Positions 29,836 to 61,286 are shown, counted from the first letter of the stretch. The stretch: DNA of 64,000 bases from Pristiophorus japonicus (GCF_044704955.1 NC_091995.1:40176001-40240000), one strand, 5' to 3'. Numbers and translations: made by a program. The notes: generated by a model from the sequence alone, not told the origin.

Positions 29836-30721
29836 GGTTATCTCGCTTAGGATCTGAGAATGCATTAATGGATTATTGTGCCAACTCATTTGAACTTGCG
29901 TCACAATAGCCATATCTTGAATGTTTTCCAGCAGAGAAAAACCAAATGCTGTACCGCTTTGTTTAATAAATGTTATTAAGTCACCGATAATAGTGTTGGT
30001 ACTAACAGTCCAACTGGGGTACAGCCATAGGTGTGTTTCTCCCACTGGACCCAAGTTGCACTCCCAAACCAATCTGTGCGGCAGGCTCACTCGGCGTCCA
30101 GGTATATGAGTGGCAGGGAGGTCAGGAACAAGGAGACTCCAATCATGGGAATTGCCTGCCTCTATCGCACTTCCTTCTACGTCTCACACCATATTTGAGT
30201 CAGACTGAGGTTTTGCCCCAGTTGGGCCCAATCAGAAATTTGCAGTGTAGTTCTGGAGCCCATATAGTAGGGTTTCTCCCAATTTTCTGAAGGCCACACC
30301 GTAGTCTGGGATGGCTTACACGCTGAGTGTACCACTGGCCCGGTGAAAATTCAGGACCTCTGTAGCTACAAACATTGATAGTGCCAATCGTACCTACAAT
30401 TAAACACTTATATCGTTAGATAGCACATATGTGTAATTGTTAATGTGAAAACATATGAATGAAAGGGTCTGGCTTAAATTGATATGACCCATGACTCAGT
30501 AACTGCATCTTTCGAAATAACTAAAAAGTTCAAAATAATCAGTCATTCCTTGTTTTGTGTGACTGCATTCCTGCTCTTGCTGCTGGTATAATAATATTAT
30601 CTATTGAGATGTACATCTCGTGTTCGTATCCCTCATTCCCACTGGGAAATCTGCATAACAAGGTTCTATTCCCGCTGAGCATTGGAGTAAAAACAGCTGC
30701 CTAATTAATTTGTTCAAGTAA

Positions 30722-30784
30722 CTGTAACTAATGTCAATTATTGCCTGACCTAAATGTCTTGAGATTGCTCAAAAAGTATAAATA
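30722..30784 (+). promoter_or_regulatory. Putative GPCR proximal promoter: conserved 19-mer CTGTAACTAATGTCAATTA plus TATA box (TATAAATA 30777..30784)
   Basis: The 19-mer is identical upstream of the paralogue (52188..52206) at similar spacing to the ATG (129 vs 134 bp). Confidence 0.7.
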
Positions 30785-30850
30785 TGGCCCATTTCAACGC
30801 ATCTCTTTGGTTTAAGATTCACACCAAGAGCTCACTTCGTCGCTACGAAA

Positions 30851-30920
30851 ATGGGACAATCTGTAATTCCACAGATCGAAGAAATTTACTATCCTATTCT
30901 TGCACTGGTCGGCATTCCTA
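30851..30920 (+). CDS. GPR139-like GPCR coding exon 1 (MGQSVIPQIEEIYYPILALVGIP, phase 1)
   Basis: ATG, 70 nt, GTAAGT donor; joins exon 2 in frame to complete TM1 (VGIPSNLVAIVIL); homologous 70-nt exon at 52322. Confidence 0.9.
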
Positions 30921-31917
30921 GTAAGTTACTATAATCAGTCATTCCTTGTTTTGTGTGACTGCATTCCTGCTCTTGCTGCTGGTATAATAATATTATCTAT
31001 TGAGATGTACATCTCCAGTTATTGTGAGTGAACTAGTAAAAAACAGTTTAATACAATATAATCATTACGGCATTATATAGATGTAAACACCATTTTGCAT
31101 AATGGTGTCACTCAGTGCGGTGAATGTACTGCGTTGAGTAAAGTTGTTACAGTGGAGCCAGTAGTCATCCCACAAGCCTATTGTTGTATTAGTTATTCAG
31201 CATTATAATTCAACTTCATTTCAATGTGGGGTTTTTGTTAAGCTATTTTATTACAACGATAATAGATTGCATTTATTTAATGCCTTTAATGTAGAAAAAC
31301 ATCCACAGCGCTTACAACATCAATGTTCCCAATACAGACTTTGAAATAATCTTTTATACAGTACACATCTGGTACATCTTCAGGGATTCCTTTTCAAGGT
31401 TGTGAACAGAATGATTGACCGTTGTCTCATATTTCCCTTTAATGTAAATCATTCAATTTGCTTGCAACCTTAGCTTTGTGCACAGTGAATTGTTATCATA
31501 CATTCCTAATATTTGGGAAGGATGAAGGAGGTGGTTATTTTGACTTCTCTTCCATTTATTTTATGAGCCAGGGCAATGCCTTGATAAGGGAAGTTGTGCT
31601 CCTGTTACATTCCTCAAATAGCTAATTACATTATTTGGAAATACTGGGGCATTTCTGGCTACTTTAAATAGTTTAAGGTAGTGCATAAGTTAACAATTGA
31701 ACTTATGTTTTCGGATATTGTTTATTGTTTCTGTAAAATGATATATCTTGTTAATAAGTCAACTGTGAATGTTGGCCCACCCTGTATAATTTTTTAAAAG
31801 AGATGTAATAAACCCCACATTGAGCACAGTATTGATTCAATAACTCATTGATTGTTTGATGTATTGACTGATTTGTGATTTGTTGATTCCTTGACTCTGT
31901 GAGTCACTAATTCCTTG

Positions 31918-32193
31918 AGGCAATGTTGACTTTGGGCAATAAAGTAAAACGAGTGATATTGGATATAATGTCTGTTATACATTTCTCCCAATTTTTATCA
32001 CCTTTCACTTCAATGGAAATGAAAATTGGGGAGAACCGTAAATGGCCCATATTACATTATCGCTCAGTTTTACATCTCTCCCAATTTGTATTTCCATTGA
32101 AGTCAATACAAAGTAAAATGGAAGAGGTGTAAAATGATCTGCCTACTCACTATCATCCCATTACATTATTACACAAAGTCAAGATCCACTCCC
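31918..32193. mobile_element. Fold-back MITE copy (compound) in the GPCR intron
   Basis: TTGACTTTG...CAAAGTCAA termini; internal TCTCCCAATTT/AAATTGGGGAGA and CATTGAAGTCAAT palindromes. Confidence 0.65.
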
Positions 32194-32199
32194 TGGTCA

Positions 32200-33740
32200 T
32201 AACAACAACAACAACTTGGATTTATATAGTGTCTTAAGAGTAGTGAACCTTCCCAACGTGCTTAACAGGAGTATTATGCGTCGAAATCTTTGACACCGAG
32301 CCGCATAAGGAGAAATTAGGGCAGGTGATCAAAAGCTTGGTCAAAGAGGTAGGTTTCAAGAATATCTTCAAGAAGAAAAGAGAGGTATAGAGGCAGAGAG
32401 GTTTAGGAAGGGAATTCCAGAGCTCAGGACCTTGGCAACAGAAGGCACTGCCACCCATGGTTGAGCGATTATAATCAGGAATGCTCTAACAGGGCAGAAT
32501 TAGAGGAGCGCAGATATCTCGGGGGGGTTGCGCGGCTGGAGGAGATTACAGACAAAGGGGGTGTGAGGCCATGGAGGGATTGGAAAACAAGGATGAGAAT
32601 TTTGAAATCGAGGCATTGCTTAACCAGGAGCCGATGTAGGGCACAGGGGTGATGGGTGAGTGGGACATGATGTGAGTTAGAACACGGGCAGTTGAATTTT
32701 GGATGACCTCTAGTTTATGTATTAAAGAATGTGGGAGGCCAGCCAGGAGTGCATTGAAATAGTCAAGTCTAGAGGTAACAAAGGCATGTATGAGGGCTTA
32801 AACAGCAGATGAGCTGAGGCAGAGACTGGCGATGTTACAGAGGTGGAAATAGGCGGTCTTAGTTATGCTGCAGATATGTGGTCGGATGCTCATTTCAGGA
32901 TCAAATAAGACACCAAGGATGTGAACTGTGCAGTTCAGCCTCAGACAGAAGTTGGAGAGAGGGATGGAATCAGTGGCTATGGAATGGAAGTTTGTGGCGG
33001 GGACCGAAAACAATGGCTTCGGTCTTCTCAATATTAGATTTGAGAACATTTCTGCTCATCTAGAACTGGATGTCAGACAAGCAGTCTGACAATTTGGAGA
33101 CCACGGAGGAATCAAGAGAAGTGGTAGTGAGTGAGAGCTGGGTTTCATCAGCGTACATATGGAAACTGACATTGTGTTTACAGATAATGTCGCCAAGGGG
33201 CAACATGTAGATGGAAAATAGGAGGGGGCCAAGGATAGATCCTTGTCAGACACCAGAGATAACAATGTTGGAGTGGGAAGAGAAGCAGTTGCAGGTGATT
33301 CTCTGGCTATGGTTAGATGAATAATAATGGGACCAGGCAAGTGTCGACCCACTCCACTGGATGATGGTGGATAGGCGTTGGAGAAGGATAGAGTGGTCAA
33401 CCTTGTCAAAGGCTGCAGACAAGTCAAGAAGAATGAGGAAGGATAGTTTGCCTTTGTCACTTGAATGTCATTTGTGACTTTGATGAGAGCCATTTTGGTG
33501 CTGTGGCAGGCATGGGAACCGGATTGGAGGGATTCAAACACGGAATTGTGGGAATGATGGGCACGGGTTTGGCAGGCATCAACATGTTCAAGGACTTTGG
33601 AGAGGAAAGGGAGGTTGGAGATAGAGCAGTAGTTTGGAAGGACAGAGGGTTCAAGGGTTGGTTTTGTGATGACGGCAAATTTGAGGGAGAGGGCGACAGT
33701 ATCTGAGGAGAGAACCGTTAACAATGTCAGTTAATATGGG
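32200..33740 (-). mobile_element. L2-clade LINE RT and 3' end with (TTG)n tail, in the GPCR intron
   Basis: KPTLEPSVLPNYCSISNLPFLSKVLE...[14 protein letters not shown]; ITKTAYFHLCNIA; ELWNSLPKPL; (CAA)n-CTTGGATTTATATAG on +. Confidence 0.88.
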
Positions 33741-34104
33741 AGGAAGAAAAGGAAGTTCTTAGTTCACTTCTTGTGTGTTCTTATTAATTGTAAGGATGGC
33801 ACACTAATGTGTTTGATTATCATATTGCCTGTGGAGCACCATGTTACATGGGGAATGACACTCCATTCTACAGCAGTTATTGATGTTTTGAGGTAACATA
33901 AACTGGACGTGGTGTGAAACCGGCTGCTGTTTCACTGTGAGCCGGTTTGGCGCAACCGCCCAAGGCCAATTTCACCCCATTACTGAGTCGAGCGACTGCA
34001 CAAAGGATTTGGAGTTAATTTCGATATAACATATTCTCAATCTGATTATTCCTAGGAATTAAGTGTAATGAGTATGTTTCCCTTCTATTCTCATTTTCTC
34101 GTAG

Positions 34105-35030
34105 GCAATCTAGTGGCGATTGTGATTCTCTCCCGTGGGAAGTGCGGTCTTTCTAAATGTATCACTCGTTACCTGGTGGCCATGGCAGCGGCAGATCTAC
34201 TGGTGATAATATTTGATGTGATATTTTATGAGATTAATGACATTTATTTCCCATATTCATTCTTGGACTACACTCCTGTTTGCAGCCTGATTATCGCCCT
34301 GGTTTTTGCAGCTATTGATTGCTCTGTCTGGTTAACTGTCACCTTCACTTTTGATCGATTTGTCGCCATTTGCTGCCAGAAACTGAGAGCGAAATATTGC
34401 ACCGAAAGAACCGCGGCCATTGTAATAACGATTGTGTTTGGACTGAGCTTTGTGGAAAACATTCCCATTTACTTTGAGAATGAGCACCTGGAAATGATTG
34501 ACAATGTGGCGTGGTTCTGCAGTGTAAAATCAAGCCTCTCTACCTTACCAATATGGGTAGCATACTTCTTCCTTGATATCACCATAACCCCATTCGCACC
34601 ATTTGTGTTGGTTCTGCTGCTCAATGCCCTGACCATCAGGCACATTGTACGGGCAAGTAGAGCGAGGAGGGGACTCCGGGGAAATAACAATAGTGAGGAT
34701 CACAATGATCCAGAGATGGAGAACCGAAGAAGATCGATCATATTACTGCTCGCCATCTCCAGCTGCTTTATACTGTTATGGATGGTTACGTTTGTACATT
34801 TCATATGTACACAATTTACAGACATTCAGTTTATGCTCACAGATTACAATGATCCATTCGCCATCATGGAGCACACAGGATATATGCTTCAGTGTTTGAG
34901 TTCATGCACAAACACATTCATCTACGCAGTGGCTCAAGCTAAATTCAGAGAGGAATTGAAGAATATCGTTAAATATCCCCTGAGTCTAATTGTGAAGTTA
35001 GTGGCTTCAAAAAATTTAAACTCAATGTAG
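34105..35030 (+). CDS. GPR139-like class A GPCR coding exon 2 (TM1 end to C-terminus); spliced protein 331 aa
   Basis: Polypyrimidine-TAG acceptor at 34104; YLVAMAAADLL (TM2), TFDRFVAIC (DRF), ILLLAISSCFILLW (TM6), SSCTNTFIY (TM7), helix 8 KFREEL; no stops. GPR139/142-family-like; orthology not established. Confidence 0.92.
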
Positions 35031-35309
35031 TCAAACCTCAGCCCAGCTATTAGCCAACGTGGATCACAATATATTCTCTGAATCCATTTATAATTGTAAG
35101 GCATTTTATCTTTCCCACTCTCTCTTTTTCCACGTATTGTAAGATAACAAATATACTGAAGGAATGTGCCAGATGACTGAATGCAGGAAAAATGCTCTGG
35201 GGTGAAGGTTGTCTTGTCCAGAATCGCATCATGGACAGCAGTAAATCGACAGATCATTTTACAATCTGCCTGATTTTATTTTCCATTGCATGCAATGATT
35301 GTAATAAGT

Positions 35310-35473
35310 ACATCTGCTGGTGGAGTAAAACGGGTGATATATCTGATCGGCGGTCCGTTATACACCTCTCCCAATGTACCTTTCCAATGGGAAGGACAAT
35401 CGGGAAAGTGTTGAATGGAGGCTAGTCCGATATCACCCAGTTTACACCATGGGCACAGGTTAAAGTTACCCCC
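35310..35473. mobile_element. Fold-back MITE copy 3' of the GPCR
   Basis: GTAAAACGGGTGATAT ... ATATCACCCAGTTTAC arms; end GTTAAAGTTACCCCC. Confidence 0.65.
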
Positions 35474-36519
35474 GTGTATTAAACAGGCCACAGATCCACT
35501 ATGGCTCGTTTTGCACTCCGGCCCATGACCAATTGGGTCTCCAGCTCTTTCTGCAGCCACAGAAAATCCCGCTGGGGCAATGTTTCTTCTGCCGGGCCCC
35601 TACATGCCGAAACAAGTTTAGGGCAGTGTCTGGGGTCTTTCAGGCCGACACCAGGAATCAGTTACGCCAATAATTGGCCAGCAGAACTACAGTTGGCTGA
35701 GAGCGGACGCCTGTTCTGTTCCAGGCCGAAAGTGCCGCCAAATTTCAAAAGATCAATAGCAACCAATCCTCATTTGGATAGGAGGCTAATGTCATAAACC
35801 CAGAAATAAAGGATAACATTCGAATCTCTTCCATCTATGGCTTGAGTGCCCAATGGCACTCCCACTCCAACATTAGGCCGCTTCTGTAGGACCGTGTTGC
35901 CTCCATTTCAATTTAAATAATCCCTCTACTCATATTTGGCAAGGGATCACCATCAGGTGAAGCGGCCAATGACAGTACAACACTGTCACACCCACAGTAC
36001 GTGTTTATTCATTTATTGGTTTCTTTCAGGCCAGCTGCAGCTGAAGGCATTACCTGGAGTTCAGGTATTAAAGCACTCGGCCACGTTTCCCAATTCATGG
36101 CCTATCTGATTTCAGTGCAGAGGAGCGAGCAGTTATTGCTGCCGTCCCACGGCCGCAAATGCTGGAACCTCCATTCAATGGGAAGCCCCGTGTGTTCTTT
36201 ATGTGGTCAAGAGGATGGTGGCGCGATAGTGAAATTGGCTCTTCTGAAAGCCGCTGTTCATCAAATCAGGGGTCAACCGAACAATCGGTTTTCCAATGAG
36301 TAACTGGTTTTGACTTTCCTTAAGAGGAAGGAGGTAAGAAGTAACTCCAGGATGACAAGCCTGAATCGAGGTGACGAATCAAGTTATGGCTCTGTGGTCA
36401 ATTCAGTAAAATGATCCTTGGACCAGGCACGTGTGCACTACTCTGGTACTCTGTTGACAATTTGTCAGCCAGTATGGGTCACTGGTGGAACCCTGATGGG
36501 TCGATGTGTTGTTCAGAGT

Positions 36520-37635
36520 CATAGAATCATAGCCATTTACAGCACAGAAGGAGGCAATTTCGGCCCATCATATCCGCGCAGGCCGACCAAAAGCTATCCA
36601 GCCGAATGCCACTTTCCAGTGCATAGCCGTAGCCCTGTCGGCTACGGCACTATACGTGCACATCCAAGAATCTTTTAACTGTGGTGAGGGTTCCTGCCTC
36701 TACCACCCTTTCAGGCAGTGAGTTCCAGACCCTCAACACCTTCTGGGTGAAGACATTTCCCCTCATATCTCATTTAAATTTCCCCCCAATTACTTTAAAT
36801 CTATGCCCCCCTGGTTGTTGACCGTTCTGCCAAGGGAAACAGCTCCTTCCTATCCACTCTATCCAGGCCTCTCATAATTTTATACACCTCAATAAGGTCT
36901 CCCCTTAGCCTCCTCTGTTTCCAAGAAAACAAACTCAGCATCTCCAATCTTTCCTGATAGCCAAAATTCTCCAGTCCATGCAACATTATTGTAAATCTTC
37001 TCTACACCCTTTCCAGTGCAATCACATCTTTTCTTTAATGCGGTGACCAAATCTGCACGCAGTACTCCAGCTGTGGCCTAACCAGTGTTTATACAGTTCA
37101 AGCATAACCTCCTTGCTCTTGTATTCCATGCCTCGACTAATAAAGGCAAGTATTCCATATGCCTTCTTACCCACCTTGTCTACCTGGCCTGCTACCTTCA
37201 AGATTGTTCCTCTCTTGGCTCTACATCACCTGCCATTGTAAAGCTCTAACAGGGTATGACATCATAATCTGATCGGCAGGCAGAATCTTGCCGCTCCCCA
37301 TAACACTTCACTCCCTTATCGTTCAAAAATCTGTCTATCTCCACCTTAAATATATTGAATGACCCAGCCTCCGCAGCTCTCTGGGGCAGAGAATTCCACA
37401 GATTTACAACTCTCTGAGAGAAGAAATTCCTCCTCATCTCATTTCTAAAATCACCTATTAGTGCCGTACCTTTCTTACAAGCCTCCATTATTTATTGATT
37501 TATACTCTGTCCAACAGTGTGGCTACTGTTAGGTGGCCTATAGTGTGACTTCTTCCCCTTATTATTTCTGATCTCCACCCAAACTGATTTTACATCTTGA
37601 TCTTCTGAGCCAATATCATTTCTCATCACTGCACA
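36520..37635 (-). mobile_element. Cluster of CR1 fragments (3' end 36520..37200; scraps 37285..37445 and 37450..37635)
   Basis: RRLRGDLIEVYKIMRG; NFFSQRVVNLWNSLPQ; SVWVEIRNNKG...YRPPNS. Confidence 0.85.
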
Positions 37636-38254
37636 TAACGACGTGCTGGTTTTGTCAAGCATCCAGTAATTCTGCAAGCATCGATATTTTAATAAGTTGG
37701 TTTAGAGAGCTTTAGTCACAGTGACCAATTTCTGTGCCTGGCAATTACATTTCTTCGGTAGTTAATTATGCACTCAGTCTGCGTGCCGCAAGATCCCCAA
37801 ATTAAGGCCGGTTAAACTGCATTGGTGGTGATTTAGGGACGTGTTTTGGCCAGAAAATAGAGAGATCTTGAATGCTGCCACAGGGACTTTAACGTGACCC
37901 AGAATAGAAAGAGGGCTCGTGGGTCAATGTATCGCTCCAACTATTGCCCCCGTGACAAAGTGCCGCTCCTTCAATGAGACATCCGCTCAACGCTTGAGCC
38001 AAGTTTGAACCTGCAGCCTTCTCAACCAGTGCTGAATGATCTGTCGGTTCCACAAAGCTGATCTGTTATGTGGAGAAATGCTATGAGTCTTTTCAGGATA
38101 ATTCTGATGCTCAAGTATTTATTTTGTTCAAAATGTTTAAATGAATGAATGGCGTATTCTGAGCAACTGCTGAATTTACGACGAGCAATTCCGCCCTTTC
38201 TAGCTCTTATACTGAGGCACTGAGAAGACAATGGCCCCTATAATACGAAAACAA

Positions 38255-38397
38255 CACACTGCGGATGCAGAAAATCTGAAATAAAAGCAGAAAATACAGC
38301 AAACACTCAGCAGGTCGGACAGCATCTGTGGAAAGAGAGAAATTAGTTAACGTCATCGAGCTGCTGAGCATGTCCAGCATCTTCAGTTTTCATCTCA
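38255..38397 (-). mobile_element. Penelope pLTR-derived short element with an inverted arm
   Basis: Reverse complement of the 1855..1945 PLE end, then flips to forward orientation (CTGCTGAGCATGTCCAGCATCTTCAGTTTT). Confidence 0.65.
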
Positions 38398-39171
38398 TTA
38401 GTCTCCTTACAATTGTTTGTCAGCCCCGTCTGTTCTTTAACAATAATAATAGTTCCGGCTGTAATAGTTCGATTTTAGCCAAATTGGCAATTTGAATAAA
38501 ATCTAATGAAACGGGTGTGGTGACGCAATGTATGGGCGATTTACAATTCTCCTTCTTCAAATCTGATGTATAACTGCGCAGCAGTCGCAGTAAATGAAAT
38601 ATATAAATAAAATATCAAAATACACTGTTGATTTGGAGATCTTTTGATGGGATATACTTCATTCATTCATTCTCGGAGGAAATATTAAAGATCGAATGAT
38701 GTATTTGAGAAATGACCCAGTGTTTTAATTCTCTATTTGACCAATCTCGTCTAATTCAATTTCCCTACTTGAGCTCATTGCTATTAAATCTTCCCATTCA
38801 AACAACGCAATTTTAAATGAATGATGTATTGTTATTTATTTAAATGTAATATTCAAGACAATTTACAAAAGTGAAGGAAGCACGTATTTTACGACATGGC
38901 TTATCATCCAATGTTGATTCTGATTTTAAAATTGTGAATTTGATTACGAACATCAGAACAAATACACCCATTCCAATCTCATCGATCTTTCTTTCAGTGG
39001 TTGAAAATCTGCAAATGACCTTGTTGTGAGCTACACTCCAAAGCAGAGATTTGCAGAGCCAGACTTTAGTTTACTGGTCCAGTTTTAGGATCAGTACACT
39101 CAAATACCCATAATCTGAAGATACTCTCTCTTCCAGCGTAAGTTGGAAGTTCCTGCCCGGTATAAATAATT

Positions 39172-40485: not shown

Positions 40486-41154
40486 CACAGGGCTAGATTT
40501 TCCACTTTTTTGCATGCTTAACGCTTACTTAATGACCATTTTACCGCTGAAATGACATATAAAGCCCATATAGCGCCCATTTAGCCATAAAATGGAAAAA
40601 CTGATGGACATTTTTCAGAAACTTATCGCCGAGCATTACTTTTCCCATGTCGGGAAAAAATAATACTGCCTGCCCATTTTTTGGGGGTGGGATCATCAGA
40701 ATGTGCAAAATCAATGCCCATAATATCGCCCAGAGAACATTTCTGCACGGAATTAATGCCGAGATTCAATAATACCGCCGCCCACTTTTCTTTGTCGTAA
40801 AGATCACATTTGCCAAAACTAATGGCCATGAGATCACCCAGCGTCACTTTCACCACCTCGCACACATATCGCCCACAATATTGCTCACCCAAAAAAACGC
40901 CCAGAAAAAGTGGAACTAACCAGAACTAATCACAGCATTGTAGATGCCATGTTCTACATCACAAGTCCCATTCTTTAAAAGGCTGCTGTGCTTCAACCTC
41001 AGGGGAGTTCGGATGTACTATGGAGGTCATTGGAGTTGATGTGAACATCTGTACAAACATCTTGACCATACTGTGACCGATTGGAATTTAATAGGTGTAT
41101 TCATCAGGACATTCATAGTTTGTGGCCAATCGGTGGAAAACAGAGAGTGTTGGA

Positions 41155-42372
41155 ATGGGGCCTGTCCTTTCTCACCTTCTCTTGATGACCAATTACATGC
41201 TGCAGACTCGAGATGGCCAAAGGTACGCTCCACAGCATTATGTGCCCAATTTAAGATGTGCCATACTAATGAGAAGGGCCAGATGTTACACCCCCCCCAC
41301 CCACAAGTACAGGGACAAGCGGTCTTACCTTGACTTGCCCGACACCACCTGCCTTCGGAGACTACGCTTCCACAAAAATGTTATCACTGAGGAATGCCAG
41401 CTCATAAGAGGAGATCTGCAGCCTGCCAGCACTATCAGTACTGCACTGTCTGTCGAGGTCAAAATCACTGCGGCATTGTCGTTCTACATGTCAGGTTATT
41501 TTCAGGTCTCAGCTGATGACATTTGTGGTCTATCTCAGCATGTCACACATTGCTGCATTAGACAGGTCACTGAAGCACTGTGCGCATGCAGGAGGGACTT
41601 GATCAGCTTCCCTATGACCAGGGAGGCACAGAGTGAGAGGGCTCTAGGATTCTCCAGAATTGCAAACTTTCCCAAGGTGCAGGGAGCAATAGACTGTACG
41701 CATATCATGAAGCGGGCAACATTTCAGGATGCAGAGATTTTCCGGAACTGCAAGGGATTCCACTCCCTGAATGTCCAACTCGTTGTCAATGACCAGCAAA
41801 TTATAATGGCAGTGAATGCTAAATTTCTAGGCAGCATCCATCATGCTCACATCTTGTATGAGAGTACTGTATCTGAATTGTTTAACAATCAGCCACAAGG
41901 TCAATGCTGGATGCTTGGTCACAAAGGATATGGCCTCGCCACCTGTCTGATTACCCCACTGCGTGACACCCACACCGAAGCCGAGAGGCGATACAATTAC
42001 AGCCACAGAGCCACTTGCAATATCGTGGAGAAAACCATTGGAGTGCTTAAGCAGCACTTTAGATGCCTGGACCACTCAGGAGGCGAGCTCCAATATCACC
42101 CTGAGCAGGTAGCTCAATTCGTGGTCATATGGTCCATGCTGCACAACTTGGCTATCAAGACGGGACAAGAATTGCCTGATGAGTTTGACAGTCCACCTCA
42201 CCAGAGAGAGGAAGAGGAGGATAAGGAGGCAGATGCTGACATCGGCCCAGACAATCAGGCTGATGCTGAAGCCATGCCCACGTCCCCCTGAAGACCGCAT
42301 GAAAGGGCCCGTGGTGGCATGATACCTGCAAGAACCTTATGTCAGGAGCTCATCAATGAGCGCTTCACCTGA
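41155..42372 (+). pseudogene. Harbinger DDE transposase (HARBI1-family), catalytically dead
   Basis: RLRF, FPKVQGAIDCTH, KGFHSLNVQ, MLGHKGY (usual GDxGY Asp is His), VEKTIGVLKQHFRCL, LHN; in-frame TGA at 42289 before the typical C-terminus ARTLCQELINERF. Confidence 0.9.
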
Positions 42373-46825: not shown

Positions 46826-46929
46826 CTGTTGGGAGCAAAACCCCACAAGTTGCGCAGAGTCTTGTCAAATTCATTCCTATCTTATGTCACAGGCAGAATC
46901 ATACTTTCCTTCCATGTTTATGATTCAGA

Positions 46930-51155: not shown

Positions 51156-51371
51156 AATTGGTTATGAGTATTGAAGTCCGTAATTTACTGAACAGAACTC
51201 AATGGTAAATTCATTGTTAAACTGAGTCAATAATTCGTATTTTATTCAACCTGTTTCATACTGTCGGTTTACAAAAAGAATCATTCCTGCATCTAACAGC
51301 GGTTTCTGCAGTTTTAATCATCAGGAAGATGCTTCGCAGTATTGAAGATTAACAAAGTGCAACGGGAACAG

Positions 51372-51560
51372 GTGGAGCTGCAGTGGTTTAGACACTGGCC
51401 TGTCACCTCGGGGACCTGGCTCTAAATCAGTCCAGTCTAATGGGGTGAAATGTTTTTCTGTGTGCTGTCTGTACGCGTTCTATGTGAAATGAGTCAATCA
51501 AGTTCCTCATGGGACCGAGAATACAGCATAAACTTGATGTCAATTCATCGACAATTCCAC
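51372..51560 (+). mobile_element. Old tRNA-derived SINE remnant
   Basis: A-box-like GCAGTGGTTAG, then ACACTGGCCTGTCACC, degenerate B-box GGCTCTAAATC. Confidence 0.5.
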
Positions 51561-52187
51561 TCAAAGACGTGACATGATGGCTATGCGAGGAAATGGGAAC
51601 ATGTCATACTGGTGCTGCCAGTATACCCATCTGTGTGGGGGTCTATGTGTAACGCGGTGCTTTCCTCTGCACAAACTTGACCTGGGAGTGATTCGGGCTG
51701 ATAATAGCTGTGTTGAATCAGAAGAGATCCAGTCGCGAGCACCAATAGCCCACAACTTGCTGAACAGCAAGAAGAAAACATGAAAACTGTAACACACAAA
51801 TGTTTTTTTTTCAATATGTGTTTAACATTCACATTCGGGGGTGATCAAGAAATACAAAGCTTGTATTTATTTTAAAAAATAGATATACCATAAAAGAAAC
51901 TCCATGCTTTAGTGTTTAGCAAAGTGAAACCCAGTTTGGGATTATTCTGTTCATTGGTCTGATGTGACGTCGTTGCCGACGGCACCAATTATTACTGCAC
52001 CACAAACAACAACTGCGAGTGCTCAAGTCCCTGAAGGATCTGTCCCAGTTAATTTCGACCTTTCAAAAATTATATTCTAAAATAATCAACATGACATTCG
52101 AGCTGTTTTTATTGTGCTGTTTACATTACCATTGGGATGAAAAGTAACCCCTATTCACTAGTGTACCAAGGGCAAGTACTTAAATAG

Positions 52188-52250
52188 CTGTAACTAATGT
52201 CAATTACTATGTAATATAATTGTCTCATGGGCTCTCTCTCAGATATACAT
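52188..52250 (+). promoter_or_regulatory. Paralogous promoter element: 19-mer plus decayed TATA (TATACAT 52244..52250)
   Basis: 19-mer identical to 30722..30740. Confidence 0.6.
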
Positions 52251-53092
52251 GAGGGCCTCATCTGAAGATAACTCATCTTTGTGTCGCTAACACCAACAAG
52301 CTCCGTCGATTTTCATAGAAAATGGGATGTGCAATACTTGCTCAGATAGTAGAAATTTACTACCCTATTCTCGAACTGCTTGGTGTTCCTGGTAAGTCAC
52401 TATTCTCAATTACTGTTTATCTTTATCAGTGTTTAACTGCTCTTTCCACCTATGTGATAATGGCATCCGATCATTCCGAGCTATTGGCTGTATAACTATT
52501 TTTAATGGTATCAGTTAAATGACAAATGCACAAAGTTGCATAATAGTGTTTTAAGTAGATCAAATCATAGAAAGTAAAATTTCCTCTGATCTTGCAAAAT
52601 CAGCATTCTGGTTTTATTCTCCTGCAATTTTGTGGTGAATAGTCCTCTTGTTGGTAGGTTGAAGGGGAGGCAAGACTGGTGCCCACTCACTGGACTGCCA
52701 ACATTAACCCATTGAAGCTTCCTCCATTAACGATGTTAAAAGAGTCCTCATTAACGATGCAATGCTGAGGAGGGGAAACGTAGGTCCTTATTGGTTCCCA
52801 CTACTGGCAGCGATAGTGGGATTCCCATTGGGAAAAGCACGTGCCCAGTCCAATATTGTACATTAAGCAGAGCTGACTAAAAAGAGCACTAACAGTTCAG
52901 GCAGAAGCTTCAGAGCAACAAACACTTAAAATCAACAGGCAAGCAAAGTAACAGCAAACCTCAGCTGCAGCAAATATAACGGCCTGCTCAATGTGCGGTG
53001 GCCTCAGGAAACCAGTCTGCAGATGAAATCGCCCTTATATAGTGCTGGTAACAAATGGGATCGCGTTTGAGTCAAATGTTGCGGACAATGTG

Positions 53093-53511
53093 AGTCCTGT
53101 TGACTTTGGGTGATAATGCAAAATGGGTGATATCGAATTTCCGCTAATTATAGGTCCCGCTCTTTTGTCCCTTCCATCCACTCCAGCGGAAAGGAATATC
53201 GGGCCTTTGGGCGGTGAATCCCATATCGCTAATTTTATACTGTGGCCCAAAGTTAAAGTTACCCCACAATGGAAGGGGGTTCCAGCCCGCTTTAGCCTAT
53301 TTAAAGACGATTGGATGCCTTCTAGGAGGGAGTAGAGGGAACATCGCTGCTCCATTTTACTGAGTCTTTACCGAAAAGGGGCCCTAATTCAGAGCCCCTG
53401 GGGTCAGTTTAACTTTGATCTCAATGAAACGAAGCTTCGGGAGGAGTTTGTCATGGGCGGCCCATCCGATACCATTCCTTTTACACTAGCGCCGAAAGTC
53501 AAACCCGGCCC
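53093..53511. mobile_element. Two fold-back MITE copies (~53093..53265 and ~53399..53511)
   Basis: TTGACTTTGGGTGATAATGCAAAATGGGTGATAT ... ATATCGCTAATTTTATACTGTGGCCCAAAGTTAAAGTTACCCC; GGGGTCAGTTTAACTTT ... AAAGTCAAACCCGGCCC. Confidence 0.65.
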
Positions 53512-54226
53512 TTTGTCTGAACTGAGTGAGAATCCCACCGTGAACAGGTAATGCCCAGCTCGCAGCTTTTATCATTTTCAGGGCGATAAGAAACAACAGT
53601 TTGCCGCTGACTCCCCAGTACTAACCAGTATGGGCCATCACACTGCAGCAAACCCGAAAGGTGTGTATCTGTGTTATGTGCTTCCTGTGCATCGCCGATG
53701 CAGTGCCAGCAATCCGGGTCCTATTGCCAGTTCGTTAATCAATCCTCCAGCTTCTTTTTAGAATTTAAAGCAGCATTGCAAGTGAGCTAACTGTTCACAA
53801 GTGGTTAAAGTGTTTATACAGATCATATCTGAATACCTACTAATTGCAATGTTTTATATTTTATGGCGTACAAGTCTGGTACATAACACGGTTCCCGCTA
53901 CTGAGCTGTGGAACGGGCTGACTCTCGGGCTATATGTGACTGTCCTACAAGCGAGTTTGAAATAATTTGATATTGCGTTCGACCATGAAATTGAACTCAT
54001 GTTGGTCACTATGGGGGTCAAACAGCAGGATACCACCCTGCTCGCTGTTTGACTGCTTAAAATACAGGATTGAATATTAAGCGATGATTAAGATTATAAC
54101 ACCATTGCACGTGTAAAGTGAAATAATGAAGGTTATTTGCAGAAAAGGCACAAAACCTATTTATGCCTGGTTTATATTATCATTGATGTAACCTGTCAAC
54201 AAGCCATGGAATATGTGCGGGTGATG

Positions 54227-54363
54227 GCACTTGATTTAATGTTTATTTTGTCTTCCCCAAAAAGAGTTGTAGAGCTGTTGGGTAAGTGTCTGGAGTGTCC
54301 CCCAGATCAGGGGGGGGGGGGGGGCACTCGATCTAATGTTTATTTTGTACCCCCCAAAAGAGT
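54227..54363 (+). mobile_element. 137-bp insertion with a 13-bp target-site duplication; likely an extreme 3' end of a Tx1/L1-type element
   Basis: TGTGCGGGTGATG at 54214..54226 and 54364..54376; internal ~40-bp direct repeat. Confidence 0.7.
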
Positions 54364-54396
54364 TGTGCGGGTGATGCTATAAAGTATGTGTGTTAC

Positions 54397-54557
54397 ATAG
54401 AAACATAGAAAATAGATGTAGGAGTAGACCATTCGGCCCTTCGAGCCTGCACCACCATTCAATAAGATCATGGCTGATCATTCACCTCAGTACCCCTTTC
54501 CTGCTTTCTCTCCATACTTCTTGATCCCTGTAACCATAAGGGCCATATCTAACTTCC
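54397..54557 (-). mobile_element. Short CR1 3' tail
   Basis: CATAGAAACATAGAAAATAG...CATTCGGCCCTTCGAGCCTGCACC. Confidence 0.85.
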
Positions 54558-55112
54558 CAGATTCGAGTCTAAAGTTGTCTGTATAATTAAAGCCAAATGA
54601 TTGATTAAACTCCAGAAGTTACCCAATTTCACCAGTAACTATTGTTCTCCTTTGATGTAACTCAGGCAATAAAGGGTGTGACATGGATGGATAAATAGTT
54701 TTGTGTCCTCGGGATTTCCACCTGCACGTGGCACAGACAGTGAATGATTTGAGTGAATTATAAATCAGCATTAATTACCACATGACTTTGTTGTTCGAAT
54801 TACTTTTGATATCCATAATCCTGATTTATTTCCCTGCTCCCCCCGCACTATTGCCAACTTGGTGCCCATTGTGATTCTCTCGCGGAGAAGTGCGGTCTCT
54901 CCAAATACATCACTATTTACCTGGTGGTCACGGCAGCGGCTGATCTATTGGTCCTGATATTTGATGTCATGCTGTATCGGATGAATGAAATTTATTTCCT
55001 AGATTTATTCCTGGACTACACTCCGGTCTGAATTTCTTGCTAATTTTTGCTTCTATTGAATGTTCTATCTGGTTAACTGTCGCTTTCACCTTGCCATTTG
55101 TTGCCAATAATT

Positions 55113-55574
55113 GATTTATGAAGATAGGTTGAGTAGGTTGGGCCTATACACACTGCGGTTCAGAAGAATGAGAGGTGGTCTTATCGAAACACATACGGTA
55201 ATGAAGGAGGCTCAACAAGGTGGATGCAGAGAGGATATTTCCACTCATAGGGGAAACTAAAACTAGGGGACATCGTCTCAGAATAAGGGGCCACCCATTT
55301 AAAACTGAGAGAAGGAAGAATTTCTTCTCTCAGAAGGTTTTAAATCTATGGAATTCTCTATCCCAGTGAGCTGTGGAGATTGGGTCATTGAATATATTTA
55401 AGGCGGAGATAGACACATTTTTGAGTGATAAGGGAGTAAAGGGTTATGGGGAGTGGGCGGGGAAGTGGAGCTGAGTCCATGATCAGATCAGCCATGATCT
55501 TATTAAATGGTGGAGCAGGCTCGAGGGGCCAAATGGACTACTCCTGCTCTTATTTCTTACGATCTTGTGTTCCT
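55113..55574 (+). mobile_element. CR1 3' fragment inserted in pseudogene exon 2, TSD ATAATT
   Basis: ATAATT at 55107..55112 and 55575..55580; GPCR sequence resumes after it. Confidence 0.9.
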
Positions 55575-57455
55575 ATAATTAAGAGCCCAATATTACACCA
55601 ACTGCGGTGGTGGTTGTAGTAATATGAGGGCTGAGCTTTTTGGAAAATTTCCCAATTTACTTTACTTTAGAACCTCAAGTAATAAATAACAACATACCGT
55701 GAAATCAAGTCTCTATACTGTACCTAAATGGCTCACATTCTTATGGCTTGATGCAGCTTTAATGCCTTTGATTCAGTTTCTTTTGATTCTGATTATGACC
55801 ATCAGGCACATTCTGCTGACAAGTAGACTGAGGAGGGTCTCGGGAGCAGCCACAGTGACCCAGAAATGGACAATCGCAGGAAATCCGTCATTTTACTGCT
55901 GGTCATATCTGGCAGTTTTATACTGTTATGGACGGTAACTTTTATTCATTATATATGTGTACAAATTAGGGATATTCAATATTTGCACACAGACTACAGT
56001 AATCATTTCACCATCATAGAGCAAACTGGATATATGCTGCAGGATTTGAGTTCCTGCAAAAAACACCATTATTAATGCAATGTCCCAGAGTGAATTCAGA
56101 GAGGACTTAACAAATCTGGTTAAATATTTCTTGGCTCTAATTACTAAGGTAGGGAAATAATTGAAGGGTCTGAGTCTAAGCAAAACTGATTATACAGAAT
56201 TGAGACTCGCTTCCATCTTAATTATGCAACACGGACAGCAGCCGATCAGTGGCCTGTTATTCACCCAACATGAGGTTACTTTCGATAGAGTTTAATGGAG
56301 AGGAATGTCGTCAAGGGGTGTGTAATGAGCAGCCGACCTGCTCCTGCCTGGTTTGTCCCACACCTAAAGGTGAATTTCACCCCGGGCTGGTGGAACTTTC
56401 AGGTCTGGCGGGGACGAAGTCAATGAAAGGACAATCGGGCGGCGGTTATAAACGGCAGCCGAAACAATGAAGCCAGTTTTATTCCCCTCCCTGCGTTCTC
56501 TAAAATATTCCCTAATCTATTTTTAGTTGTGACATTTTAACTTTCAACTTGACTCTCTGGCGAGGATTTTCATCTTGCCGCTGAGGCCTGGAAAGGACTT
56601 TGCAGATTGGTCACCGGTGATAAATCCTCCGTCTTATTCTCATGCCCACTTTAATCCCAGGTTAGCAGCAGAGGGATTACACTGGCCTCGCTCCCTTCAG
56701 TTACACTGAATTTGCTCCGGACCGCTGTATTGGCGATGCTGCAGGTGAAATGTGAATGTGTGGACAGGAGCGGGCTCGGCTGTGTTTCCAGACATTGAAT
56801 AGTGTTTCCATGGCACTGTTTCTGTTCACAAGGGGAGACTGTTTACCTGAGGCCAATGTCAGAGTCAAGCTTTCGGGAGATAAAAGTAAATGGAAAATGA
56901 AATCAAGTTTGTGCGAATAATGTATCAATATTAACAAAACGTATTTTAAAATCCATGGCATGCCTTTATTCTGCGGGGCAGTTCTGTAATATCTAAAGAG
57001 CCAGTTTGTGCAATTATAGATGAGAGTTGACAATATTGCTTCAATGTTAAGCAAGTTAATAATATTGTAATACAGTGACTGAAACATAAGGCATGGGTGA
57101 AATGTTTATGCAAATCACATTGTTTCAGTAACAAAGCAATTGATTCACCATGACTATATCACCGTGTCCCTGGATCCAATGCAAGTCTGGTGTTTGGCCC
57201 TCTCCGGATCTGGTTAAACAACATTGTAATCTAGGGAGTGAAATACAAATGTTAGACATTCCCGAGATGATGGGGCAGAGTACAGTACAGAAAATGAAGT
57301 GACTTGTTCACACTCTTTTCATGGTTCTTCCCCTTACAGGGTGCTCCCCGTTAGCTCCCACAGTGCAGCCCTTACGGTGGCCGTTCCCCAATCCTCTGTA
57401 AATGCTGCTCTGTGGTCAGTTACACAGCAAGAAGTTGGACGCTTCAGTTCCCATT

Positions 57456-57530
57456 TCACTTCACTCCCAGTGGGAAACACTTGCTTGTTGCCTTTCCTGA
57501 TGGGAGGCTTAAATCAGGAACTCTCAGCCT
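57456..57530 (-). CDS. Candidate cytoplasmic-tail exon of the MHC class I gene (RLRVPDLSLPSGKATSKCFPLGVK*)
   Basis: TTTTAAACAG acceptor; open in phase 0, matching the TM exon donor; no homology support. Confidence 0.35.
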   Translation of the reverse strand, partial: RLRVPDLSLPSGKATSKCFPLGVK

Positions 57531-57894
57531 CTGTTTAAAACGGATTCATTAGAAGGACCCACAGTTCACAAATACCAATCTCATTCTACAGGATAAATGC
57601 TCACAGTCCAACAAGGACATCCAGTTTATTGGACATATTGCAGAGCAATAGATTCAAAGGCCGATTCTCGGTGAGAAAATGCACCGTCCTAACTGGTACT
57701 GGCCCTGTCAGCCAGGTTCCCCCTGAGTGCACCGGTCGCTGCTGTCGGAGAGTTCACATTGGCTCCAGGAGTCCTAGGCTTGGAAGGAGGGAAATGGCTG
57801 GGGTTCTGCTCCTGATGGCTATCTAACGACCCCTGCAAAAGGGCGTGTCTCGGGCAACACACATGAAGTGTGGCTCCTCAGATCAGGTACTGAG

Positions 57895-58045
57895 ATAGAC
57901 CGTTGTTTGAACGATAGGGGAGTCAATAGTTATGGGCAACAGGCAGGAAAGTGGAGGTGAGGCCAAAAACAGATCATCCATTATCTTATTGAATAGGGGA
58001 GCAGGCCCTATTTCCTTCTGCTCCTATTTCTTATGTTCTTATGTA
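57895..58045 (+). mobile_element. CR1 3' tail fragment
   Basis: Ends CTGCTCCTATTTCTTATGTTCTTATGT. Confidence 0.8.
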
Positions 58046-58132
58046 CTCATAAGCTGCTGTGTCTGCAAATCAATGAGTTGTCAGGAGAAAAAAGCCCGTT
58101 CTATAGAATTCAACATGCACGTTAATTTGACA

Positions 58133-58445
58133 GAGGTGTGGTCTTTCAGATTAGACTGTCAACTATCTATGCTCTGAGGTGGATGTGAAAGATCCCATGG
58201 CACTATTTCGAAGAAGAGCAAGGGAGTTTTTTTCCTCGTGTCCTGGCCAATATTTATTCCTCAATCAATATCACAAACAGATTATCTGGTCATTATCACA
58301 TTGCTGTTTGTCGGAGCTTGTTGAGCACACGTTGGCTGCCGCGTTTCCTACAATACGACAGTGACTACATTTTCAAAAAGTACTTCATTAGCTGTAAAGC
58401 GCTTTGGGACGTCTTAAGATAATGAAAGGCATTATATAACTATAG
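58133..58445 (+). mobile_element. Deu-domain SINE (SacSINE1/AmnSINE1-related), 5'-truncated
   Basis: AAAGATCCCATGGCACTATTTCGAAGAAGAGCA...GTGTCCTGGCCAATATTTAT...TTGGCTGCCGCGTTTCC...TGTAAAGCGCTTTGGGACGTC. Confidence 0.85.
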
Positions 58446-58557
58446 GTTTTTCTTTATAACAGATATTTAATATTGAAATATAATCCTGGGGCAGGCCACA
58501 AGATTGTCTGTGTAATAATTTTATAAACAAGACTGCAACATAATTCCCTGGCCTTAC

Positions 58558-58661
58558 CTCTCCTCTTCTCCTCCACATATAGATTGAAACCATAACGAAA
58601 GCCAGCGATACCAGTACACACACGACAATCAGCCCCACGTGCTTGTCTTTCTCTACTTTGC
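58558..58661 (-). CDS. MHC class I connecting-peptide/transmembrane exon (GKVEKDKHVGLIVVCVLVSLAFVMVSIYMWRRRGE)
   Basis: AG acceptor in frame with the alpha3 phase-1 donor, hydrophobic stretch followed by basic stop-transfer residues, GTAAGG donor; an alternative in-frame acceptor lies 9 nt downstream. Confidence 0.8.
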
Positions 58662-60518
58662 CTTTCGAAAAATATGAGCAAGGGTTGTATAATTATATGT
58701 GCGGATTGACAGTTTTACATACAACCAATGGAAACCTATGGCCCTGCTCAAGGTCAGTAGGTGGGCTGTTTTATATGTACGAGTTCCCACACCATATAGC
58801 GCACAATGTATGATTTCACTAAGGTGTGACAAGGTTCCTTTTAAAGCCATAAACTTCACTTTTTGTGAAGAACCACAGGTTCAACAAGAACTGGGCAGAC
58901 TGTAAAGGTAACTGCGGTTGGAGGGGAAGGCGGTGGGGGGGTTGGGGGGGGGGGGGGGTGCGGTAGATGCATTGGCTGCGAAGCATGGTTTCCAGAGTGA
59001 TCAGGGCTGGGCCAGCAAAATAAATGAGATGATTGGAGTCCAGTGGAAAAGGGTTGTGTTCATGGTGCCCAGCGAGGCAGGGAGAAGGCACGCTGTTCCC
59101 TCCCCCCACGGATTGCTGGGTGAGGGGATATAAGTGGGAAAGTGGCAGAGGCCTGTGTCTGTGCGGTCTGATGAAAGGGGCAATATGAGGGGTAAGTACT
59201 GGCAGTTGAATTGTTGATGGCCACTATGCCAGCTCCCAGGGCTGGGGGATCAAGCTTCTGACTGTTCCCACAGGTCCATGGGATGGGAGGGTGGTAATGG
59301 TGCAAGTTTGCAGCTCATGAGAATTGTAAATAACCAAATTATATACATAAAAGTTTACACGTAATTCAAACTGTTAAATGCTTACCTTTTTATCAATAGT
59401 AACATGGCTGCTGTATCAATTTCTAGCTTATTCTGTGGAGTTTCCCACCCAGCTCTACTTTGTGCAGTCCCAACCTTCATTCTTGCTGCAGTTTCTTGCT
59501 TTCTGGGCAAAGCCCTCACCCGCCAACTTCCCTGCCTACAGCTTCCTTTGAACTTCGAACCCTAAGGACTCGCCTCTGGACCCCTGCCATCAGGCCACAT
59601 AATTTTATCACCCCTCCCCCTCACTGTGCTACATTTTAATGAGCTTTCCCCACAACAATTCCCCACTCCTCCTCTAACATCACAAAGTGACCTGTCCCCT
59701 CAGTCCCTACCAGCGCAAAGAGACAACAGAAACAAAAACACACTGAAGCTGAGAGTGAAATAGCTTAGCACAGAGCAAACGTTCAAGCTCAGAAACTGAG
59801 CAGCTCCAGAACCACGGTGAAAGGGAACAATGAGAAAGCAGAAACAAACAGTGAAGCAACAAGCATGAATGATGAATGTAGGTTAATGTAGGTTCATCCA
59901 TTCTCTAACCCAGATAGCCTATGAAAGAGATGTGTTTGCTATCTAACTCTGAGATTGTGTGTGTGTGTATGTGTGTGTGTGTGAGAGAGGTGTGAGGGGA
60001 GGGGGGGCATGGAGAGAGACGTATAGAGTGGAATTAGACAGTAAGAAGCAATGAGAAAGATATAGAGAAAGCAAGCTTAAAAAGTACACAAGGGGTGGGG
60101 GGGGGTTGGGTGCAGATTATGGAAGAGTCAGAAGATAACAGAAATTTTCTAAAAGAGCAAGAATGAGAAACAGTCACAGGCAGCCTGCAAGTCCAGAGAT
60201 ACCCAAAGTAATGTATAAAGAAACAGGCAGAAAGAGCAAAAGTTACCCACAAGAAAATACGGTTACAAGGAGTGGAAGAATTTAATTTTCCTGTTCTTGG
60301 CTATCAGCAACAGAACAGAAGACCAAATAGTAACAACTAAAAATCACTGGGAGACAGAATATTCGGTTCATTTCTAGAGAAATGGAATAGAAAAGCAGGG
60401 AGGCAATGGGCAATTTGGTTCAGTCATGCATTTAATTGATCTCTTTCTGCTCTCTCTCCCTGTATGGGATGTTTGTGATTATTGATGGATTGTTCAGTGT
60501 TGCTGCTCATGTCCTTAC

Positions 60519-60785
60519 CCCAGGGGACAGTCTTCCCACCTGACAAGCTGCTGTGTTCAATATGACAGGAATATTGTTTCCCATCATACGGATCAAATTC
60601 AAGGCTTGTCGTTAGCTGATACGTCCCATCTTCATTGGGTAATACTCCAGTAGATTTGGTCTCAGGGGCATGTTCTCCATTCTTCAACCAGGTCACATTG
60701 ATGGACTGCGGGTAAAATCCAAGCACAATGCAGTGGAGAAACCAACGATCACCAGCCCTGGCAACAACTGAGACCTCAGGGGAAA
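60519..60785 (-). CDS. MHC class I alpha3 (Ig C1-set) exon, 267 nt
   Basis: PEVSV...LHCIVLGFYPQSINVTWLKNG...LPNEDGTYQL...YSCHIEHSSL...VPW; TAG/GTAAG splice sites, phase 1-1. Confidence 0.93.
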
Positions 60786-60850
60786 CTACATGATAGAATG
60801 ACAATTATTTTCAACTTCAATAAAAGTCGCACATTTCACAATTAATTAAA

Positions 60851-60991
60851 GGGGTTTATTTAAACCTTTGCCGCTAGTGTAAAATGGGCAATATCAGATC
60901 GGCCGCCTGTCAGAGGATAGGGTGAGGTGTGTAATGGAAGCTGATCCGATATCGCCCATTGTACAATATCGCCAAACTTTAAAATTACCCC
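60851..60991. mobile_element. Fold-back MITE filling most of the 225-bp alpha2-alpha3 intron
   Basis: ~55-bp imperfect inverted arms: GGGGTTTATTTAAACCTTTGCCGCTAGTGTAAAATGGGCAATATCAGATC / GATCCGATATCGCCCATTGTACAATATCGCCAAACTTTAAAATTACCCC. Confidence 0.8.
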
Positions 60992-61010
60992 CAGGTTGTT
61001 CTGAACTTAC

Positions 61011-61286
61011 CTTTTCTGGTTAGTGATACATTTCCAATTGAATAGTATGCCTTCCATAATTCCACACAGTCCTTTTCTAACAAGCTCTTGAAGTAATGGT
61101 TCATCATTGTTTCCTTATCCCATTTCGCTTTGAAGGTCTGAGCTAATGGATCATGTACAGTCCAAACCAATTTGTCTTTATCAAAACTAAATGCGTATCT
61201 TCCATCAAAAGCTAACTTCAGAAGCCCTCTACTAGGATTGGCGTCATTCAGCTCACAGCCAAACAGTCCTTGAATGTAATGAGTAC
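61011..61286 (-). CDS. MHC class I alpha2 exon, 276 nt, non-classical
   Basis: (G)THYIQGLFGCELNDANPSRGLLKLAFDGRYAFSFDKDKLVWTVHDPLAQTFKAKWDKETMMNHYFKSLLEKDCVELWKAYYSIGNVSLTRK; both Cys, FDG, W133, KW; TAG/GTAAGT, phase 1-1. Confidence 0.93.

Follow-up and report, generated by a model that had tools for sequence, protein, structure and literature searches.

A 64-kb stretch of the genome of the sawshark Pristiophorus japonicus, hereafter the window, was analysed; it contains no N and no masked letters, and all window searches reported here refer to this stretch. Two loci for G protein-coupled receptors (GPCRs) of class A, gene 1 and gene 2, were found on the plus strand, followed by part of a class I gene of the major histocompatibility complex (MHC) on the minus strand (Table 1). 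Comparison with relatives in other cartilaginous fishes indicates that this receptor/MHC class Ib neighbourhood is real and conserved. We consider it likely that UGA-lineage class I genes lie within a receptor array prone to duplication, with inherited physical linkage as the foremost explanation.

Table 1. Coordinates of the annotated features, counted from the first letter of the window.
Feature	Position	Strand	Remarks
90-nt direct repeat, upstream copy	30535-30624	+	5' of gene 1 promoter
19-nt element CTGTAACTAATGTCAATTA	30722-30740	+	Upstream of gene 1
TATAAATA, TATA-box-like motif	30777-30784	+	67-74 nt before gene 1 ATG; read from sequence
Gene 1	30851-35030	+	Two exons, intact; 331-aa class A GPCR
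Gene 1 exon 1	30851-30920	+	70 nt, phase 1; ATG at 30851, MGQSVIPQIEEIYYPILALVGIP plus 1 nt, then GTAAGT donor
90-nt direct repeat, intronic copy	30931-31020	+	In gene 1 intron
Gene 1 exon 2	34105-35030	+	Remainder of 331-aa receptor, stop included
19-nt element CTGTAACTAATGTCAATTA	52188-52206	+	Upstream of gene 2, exact match
Gene 2	52322-56151	+	Gene 1 architecture, dead
Gene 2 exon 1	52322-52391	+	70 nt, open, MGCAILAQIVEIYYPILELLGVP, GTAAGT donor
Gene 2 exon-2 remnants	54826-56151	+	Seven pieces across three frames
Retroelement-tail insertion	~55106-55600	+	Splits gene 2 between the end of transmembrane helix 3 and intracellular loop 2
Class I last coding exon	57159-57230	-	tblastn with P0121
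Class I connecting-peptide/transmembrane/start-of-tail exon	58558-58661	-	tblastn with P0121
Class I alpha3 exon	60519-60785	-	C1-set Ig domain, 2e-19
Class I alpha2 exon	61011-61286	-	Pfam MHC_I, 2e-15

Receptor and class I genes in the sawshark window

The plus-strand open reading frame (ORF) at 34068-35030 encodes 320 aa and matches the Pfam profile 7tm_1 with an E value of 9.6e-22 (profile positions 1-260 of 260). The gene 1 protein is already annotated, being identical to the P. japonicus protein P0001 (331 aa, 'probable G-protein coupled receptor 139'), which starts with the exon-1 peptide and continues with exon 2. The intervening intron measures 3184 nt and ends in the acceptor ...tcgtag, the AG of which closes at position 34104. 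An AlphaFold model made with 92 family sequences (predicted local distance difference test score, pLDDT, 86.2) has seven transmembrane (TM) helices, a hairpin in extracellular loop 2 and helix 8, with about four residues preceding TM1. The 7tm_1 profile together with the seven modelled helices places gene 1 among the class A GPCRs, and it is an intact and probably functional receptor since its frame is open and both its micro-switches and its orthologues are conserved.

Gene 2 repeats this layout with an intron of about 2.46 kb, and its second exon is disrupted by a stop within the frame, by an inserted repeat about 490 bp long and by several deletions. An AG is absent at the position homologous to the gene 1 acceptor. 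The repeat family of the insertion recurs among the translations throughout the window. With exon 1 and the intron retained and the frame of exon 2 disabled, gene 2 qualifies as an unprocessed pseudogene. No third receptor copy was found in the window by tblastn with 120 family proteins, which returned only the gene 1 and gene 2 loci; the other matches in the window correspond to transposon-derived ends of mis-modelled proteins. Between the two genes, a 389-aa open frame at 41122-42291 on the plus strand matches DDE_Tnp_4, a PIF/Harbinger-type transposase domain (E 2.5e-26).

Upstream of gene 1 and gene 2 the DNA aligns poorly, the exception being the stretch with the 19-nt element, which is located 111-134 nt 5' of each ATG. 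Two exact matches to this element occur in the window where 0.02 were expected, none of 100 shuffles gave two, and no further copy was found elsewhere in the window even when three mismatches were allowed. The gene 2 counterpart of the TATA-box-like motif is degenerate. The element is a conserved footprint within what may be a core promoter, and the homeodomain site invoked in the preliminary description is one possible reading of this conserved 19-mer. A scan for bacterial promoters and terminators, which is unsuited to a eukaryote, returned nothing for the region upstream of gene 1.

The preliminary description had proposed an intact receptor gene with a 70-nt phase-1 first exon and one large second exon, a dead same-strand locus of matching layout, and a promoter element common to both. 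All three are borne out: by the coordinates and P0001, by the preserved exon 1 and intron of gene 2 next to its broken exon 2, and by the identical 19-mer at each locus. The start coordinate that it gave, 30535, does not mark the gene but the first base of a 90-nt direct repeat, the two copies of which, 98% identical and 396 nt apart, flank exon 1 of gene 1 together with its promoter. The upstream copy looks recent because gene 2 shows a weak match to the intronic copy only.

The two loci were observed to belong to different orthogroups. Of 7638 candidates from a search with the exon-2 ORF, 2400 proteins reached E<=1e-5, and statements on names, species and clades in this family refer to the best 120 of these 2400. 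In a FastTree phylogeny of the 120 proteins, P0001 lies on a short branch in a clade of 12 entries with a support of 100, to which ten species contribute one to three members each. Heterodontus, Chiloscyllium, Scyliorhinus, Mustelus, Stegostoma, Hemiscyllium, the skates Leucoraja and Rhinoraja, and the ray Mobula are represented in it. Cross-species identities to gene 1 range from 74 to 86%, whereas the sawshark paralogues reach at most 70% (best 120 of 2400). The gene 1 orthogroup is thus common to sharks and batoids.

The gene 2 pieces found their best BLAST matches in P0070, P0044 (Heterodontus) and P0060 (Scyliorhinus torazame) at 59-68% identity, with P0001 at 59.5%. When the pieces were read through with X at the breaks, IQ-TREE placed gene 2 in a five-member clade with P0044, P0070, P0060 and P0116 (Shimodaira-Hasegawa-like approximate likelihood ratio test, SH-aLRT, 100), and the read-through sequence was 75% identical to P0044. 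Gene 2 is accordingly what decay has left in the sawshark of a second orthogroup, an old one whose members in the horn shark and catsharks are still intact. Recent duplication of gene 1 as the source of gene 2 was ruled out by the separate orthogroup placement.

Expansion within lineages is also evident. Clades restricted to the sawshark, the sevengill, the horn shark or the skates occur in the FastTree phylogeny, and within the gene 1 orthogroup itself Heterodontus contributes eight members that are at least 90% identical, and Rhinoraja three accessions. The birth-and-death array envisaged beforehand is therefore upheld by the intact and dead paralogues, by the species-specific clades and by runs of neighbouring accessions.

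The class I gene corresponds to the annotated protein P0121, a complete chain of 343 aa; its leader and alpha1 domain (the first 105 residues of P0121) have no match within the window. The alpha2 and alpha3 domains match the PDB entry 9CH4 ('Crystal structure of shark nonclassical MHC CLASS I, UGA') with E values of 8.8e-43 and 1.1e-41, each close to 1e-42, against about 1e-15 for classical chains. The same entry was the top Foldseek match at 71% identity over 268 columns, a match that rests on the sequence part of the score as the class I model is poor (pLDDT 64.9); the entries after it reach 36% identity or less. A lineage member from Stegostoma matches 9CH4 with an E value of 6.7e-170. We accordingly assign the window gene to the UGA lineage on sequence grounds, a lineage that is kept in sharks and batoids.

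A review describes UFA and UGA, citing a personal communication, as CD1-like, MHC-linked lipid binders of single or low copy number (PMC12562908). In contrast to this single- or low-copy description, the sawshark has at least three UGA-lineage members (P0121, P0122 and P0271) and Rhinoraja at least ten UGA-type members within one 90% cluster. Our literature search yielded no primary publication on the structures of UFA or UGA.

The sawshark copy also departs from its UGA relatives in the cytoplasmic tail. The frame directly after the last-exon acceptor reads DYNVV followed by a stop, which matches the D/A-Y-x-x-V/I tail present in 12 of the 18 aligned UGA-lineage members, whereas the annotated frame of the last exon, set by the phase-0 end of the TM exon, lacks this tail and reads ITMLFNQIRRGPNTRLALDPGTR. 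Tyrosine-based tail motifs of this kind direct endosomal sorting, as in CD1. The sawshark copy thus seems to have lost the motif through a frame change.

As described beforehand, the class I gene is arranged tail-to-tail with gene 2, but the distance of about 1.3-2.4 kb given then requires revision: about 1.0 kb separates the last recognisable gene 2 residue from the class I stop codon, and 2.4 kb separates it from the TM exon. Two further features were noted in the long class I intron between alpha1 and alpha2, namely a short tandem repeat at 61826-62174, with GPGPRP... as its minus-strand reading, and a fragment of a reverse transcriptase, likewise on the minus strand, at 62973-64000 (RVT_1, E 5.3e-10).

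The receptor/UGA neighbourhood in other species

In the skate Leucoraja erinacea, a single gene, LOC129716032, has six RefSeq isoforms. Isoform X6 is an ordinary UGA-type chain ending in ...RRDYQNIQPNQNVPC. Isoforms X1-X4 (663, 657, 576 and 574 aa) skip the last UGA exon; in them a short linker joins the TM exon to MGQPVIIQIENIYYPILAIIGVP... and an entire receptor, while X5 ends after the first exon of the receptor. The fusion protein P0285 bears both the Pfam MHC_I and 7tm_1 domains. All of these isoforms, together with a further receptor (XP_055521888), are located on one contig of 249,698 bp. The fusions imply that, in Leucoraja, the UGA gene has a receptor gene immediately downstream of it on the same strand, and the isoform structures suggest read-through transcripts.

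In two more species, receptor and UGA accessions are neighbours. In Heptranchias perlo, a contig of 529,794 bp holds a receptor (XP_067834247), UGA accessions XP_067834249/250 and another receptor (XP_067834252). On a chromosome of 41.49 Mb in Rhinoraja longicauda, nine UGA-type accessions (XP_078272016, 021, 044, 051, 153, 184, 208, 227 and 232) are interleaved with about forty receptor accessions in the range XP_078272012 to XP_078272238. An order consisting of a P0114-type receptor, a gene-1-type receptor, a P0063-type receptor, a UGA gene and a P0092-type receptor was found twice, in 174/176/182/184/185 and again in 229/230/231/232/234. If accession order equals gene order, these Rhinoraja blocks would have been amplified as units, and UGA would have a gene-1-type receptor at a distance of one gene, an arrangement similar to that of the sawshark window.

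A coarser comparison counted the listed receptors that lie on a contig equal in size to that of UGA and are presumed to share it. Such receptors make up 22 of the 27 listed for Heterodontus, 10 of 11 for Rhinoraja and two of three for Mustelus. All of the listed receptors fall in this class in Stegostoma (5/5), Rhincodon (4/4), Pristis (1/1) and Hemitrygon (1/1).

The linkage thus extends beyond the sawshark to Heptranchias, Leucoraja and Rhinoraja; the preliminary description had proposed such a comparison across cartilaginous fishes, and a species-specific linkage is not what was found. Several observations weigh against reading these data as one tightly conserved neighbourhood. Gene order outside the sawshark is drawn from same-sized contigs, RefSeq fusion models and the assumption that the order of XP accessions equals gene order. 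The UGA accession of Heterodontus is about 600 numbers away from the gene-1 cluster and that of Mustelus about 1500, and in Chiloscyllium punctatum the UGA and receptor contigs differ in size; the support for tight adjacency therefore comes from the non-galeomorph cases. The receptor fused to UGA in the skate comes from another subclade, being 88% identical to Rhinoraja P0079 and 62% to gene 1, and the orientation of the two gene types is convergent in the sawshark and co-directional in the skate. No UGA-receptor fusion model was found outside Leucoraja among the 66 entries listed for the 663-aa skate fusion; among these, P0285 alone has both Pfam domains, and the cluster of P0123 contains the other fusion isoforms.

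Probable inherited linkage and its alternatives

The arrangement is best accounted for if the window belongs to the MHC class Ib neighbourhood of the sawshark, on the MHC chromosome, where UGA-lineage class I genes would lie within a tandem array formed by orphan GPCRs of class A specific to cartilaginous fish. Such an array would grow by segmental duplication and lineage-specific amplification and would shrink through decay, aided by retroelement insertion as in the case of gene 2. The UGA genes would be carried along within the duplicating receptor blocks, which is why receptor and class Ib genes would adjoin in squalomorph sharks and skates. Each receptor unit is compact, with a short conserved upstream element, a TATA-like box, the 70-nt exon 1 for the very small N-terminus and the beginning of TM1, a single intron and a large exon. 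Its product would signal through a conserved intracellular core while the extracellular half diversifies for different ligands. We infer that the linkage is an inherited physical one rather than a functional coupling.

The strongest competitor is a functional partnership, in which receptors and UGA are co-regulated in the same cells, with UGA serving for example as an escort or co-receptor, a role that has been proposed for mouse M10 towards V2R receptors, and selection keeps them linked. The persistence of the neighbourhood across squalomorph sharks and skates speaks for it, as do the Rhinoraja blocks, apparently amplified as units with a recurring gene order, and the five of the six LOC129716032 isoforms that splice the UGA TM exon to the first exon of a GPCR, which suggests read-through from the UGA promoter. 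On the other hand, sawshark and skate differ in both the orientation and the adjoining GPCR subclade, the receptor nearest to UGA in the sawshark is dead, and the sawshark UGA copy is without the canonical tail frame. In addition, a class I chain with a single TM segment placed ahead of a seven-TM receptor would invert the topology of the receptor, so that the fusion proteins are unlikely to work. We regard such a partnership as unlikely. A bolder version holds that the 'probable GPR139' expansion is a large unrecognised ligand-sensing repertoire of cartilaginous fishes, chemosensory or immune-sensing, with a core inside the MHC that co-duplicates and is co-transcribed with CD1-like UGA in a partnership that arose in these fishes independently of that of mouse V2R and M10; we judge it quite unlikely.

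Chance adjacency, or an adjacency confined to the sawshark, might be expected of so numerous a family, the wider members of which lie on many chromosomes. This appears very improbable given the small contigs and interleaved accessions that join receptors to UGA in three further species from two other orders, and the same-sized contigs that hold both in six more species. Inherited linkage within a duplicating array hence remains the reading we prefer.

Affinity of the receptor family and its counterparts

Sharks, skates, rays and unnamed Logan contigs account for the best 120 of the 2400 proteins, and all of the named entries are elasmobranch; eighteen of the 120 come from the sawshark. A Callorhinchus protein was found at 46% identity, and the family is therefore present in chimaeras too. 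More distant members are spread over many chromosomes. The expanded chondrichthyan receptor family anticipated in the preliminary description is supported by the 2400 proteins, the lineage-specific clades and the pseudogenes. Database names within the family are inconsistent ('probable GPR139', 'sex peptide receptor-like', 'FMRFamide receptor-like' and 'C-C chemokine receptor type 3-like'), so no named receptor is close.

Many of the long RefSeq models in this family were observed to carry fused transposon-derived or unrelated pieces at either terminus (P0012, P0062, P0071, P0363 and others, from the sawshark and from other species), and protein lengths are therefore unreliable. P0363 combines RVT_1 with 7tm_1, and the ends of P0012 and P0062 match repeats in the window. 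The Logan contigs with family members (P0074, P0080 and P0098) were discarded as evidence of expression as they start in an intron-derived ORF and are hence genomic.

Human GPR139 was the best solved match of the single gene 1 protein, though by a thin margin (2.6e-9 against 1.2e-8 for the next). With a profile of 25 family sequences the values were 5.8e-20 (74.7 bits) for GPR139 and 1.2e-12 (50.6 bits) for the next receptors, a margin of 24 bits. Foldseek with the gene 1 model was undiscriminating, as peptide-type class A receptors came first and GPR139 ranked 22. The likeness to human GPR139 (7VUG, 9M42) includes sequence similarity in TM1-TM3, the exon-1-encoded segment among them, and the absence of the NPxxY proline of TM7 from both. 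The GPR139 gene also has a short first coding exon. The differences are that human GPR139 is single-copy, whereas the chondrichthyan family comprises hundreds of copies in tandem arrays with pseudogenes, and that it has DRY and a TM6 proline where the chondrichthyan family has DRF and no TM6 proline. GPR142, the paralogue of GPR139, turned up in none of the comparisons made.

The label 'GPR139-like' used in the preliminary description accordingly stands for the nearest solved relative but not for an orthologue, the affinity being distant at 23% identity between gene 1 and human GPR139 (7VUG). Gene 1 is not a one-to-one orthologue of GPR139, showing neither the orthologue-level conservation nor the single copy number of the GPR139/GPR142 subfamily. 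The RefSeq name 'probable GPR139' is given only because human GPR139 is the nearest named relative.

That gene 1 is the sawshark GPR139 or GPR142, a single-copy aromatic amino-acid sensor of the brain, thus has a practically negligible chance despite the RefSeq name, the best solved match and the shared lack of the NPxxY proline (NTFIY in gene 1, NFFLY in human GPR139), being ruled out by the low identity to a receptor called highly conserved across vertebrates in two abstracts (PMC12208981, PMC7946892), the hundreds of paralogues and the missing TM6 proline (LLWMV in gene 1 against LWAP in GPR139).

The design of the family combines a constant core with a variable outer half. Residues D54, D107-R108 (in DRF), W249, N293/I296/Y297 and C162 are invariant in the 92 sequences, and C83 is at least 90% conserved; these include what we take to be the D2.50, D/ERY, W6.48 and NPxxY positions and the cysteines of TM3 and extracellular loop 2. 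The prolines of CWxP and NPxxY are missing in the family (LLWMV and NTFIY in gene 1). Variability was found to be greater in the extracellular halves and loops, at 1.32 bits, than in their intracellular counterparts, at 0.88 bits (Mann-Whitney p 3e-7). This pattern would fit ligand diversification on a common signalling core, against which it must be held that greater extracellular variability is typical of most GPCR families. Because of the family size, the array structure and the pseudogenes, and these alone, we favour a ligand-diversified sensor, chemosensory in the first place and leucocyte-borne in the second, over a classical neuropeptide receptor.

Mammals are known to have comparable GPCR arrays in linkage with class I: clusters of olfactory receptors are linked to the MHC and, in the mouse, the H2-Mv (M10) class Ib genes go with V2R receptors. 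The shark arrangement resembles these systems in that a multigene GPCR array that evolves by birth and death is linked to class I and has been kept so for long. It differs from them as the shark family is neither OR nor V2R, as the class Ib lineage is UGA, and as the shark class Ib genes lie inside the array and seemingly duplicate with the receptors. Tandem arrays, lineage-specific expansions, pseudogenes, a very short N-terminus and a variable extracellular half on a conserved core are likewise shared with the chemoreceptor families OR, TAAR, V1R and T2R. In contrast to these, the only Pfam match of gene 1 is the generic 7tm_1, and the coding region of the shark receptor is split by an intron.

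The receptor family had been called uncharacterised, and no publication on it was found in our literature search, nor was any paper linking GPR139 with shark, elasmobranch, skate or cartilaginous fish. The word 'GPR' does not occur in the main text of a catshark sensory-genomics paper, 'shark' is absent from a 2025 review of GPR139, and the terms GPR, GPCR and G-protein are absent from the available part of the main text of Verissimo et al. (PMC10751288). Both the family and its conserved place around UGA appear to be undescribed in the literature searched.

Sharks and rays are noted for their acute smell and for having very few odorant receptor genes of the classical type. With hundreds of orphan receptors in each genome and chemoreceptor-like evolution, the present family would be an obvious candidate for a sensory repertoire. 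The receptor/UGA arrangement also adds to the class Ib region of the elasmobranch MHC a component that appears undescribed, and it provides a second and independent setting in which to ask why class I genes and GPCR arrays stay together.

Outside the loci described above, the first 30 kb of the window were found to contain repeats and retroelement fragments and no convincing gene. Long low-complexity and tandem-repeat tracts with proline-, serine-, histidine- and cysteine-rich ORFs on both strands occur at 3236-4498, 7554-9728, 20759-22856 and 24557-25354.

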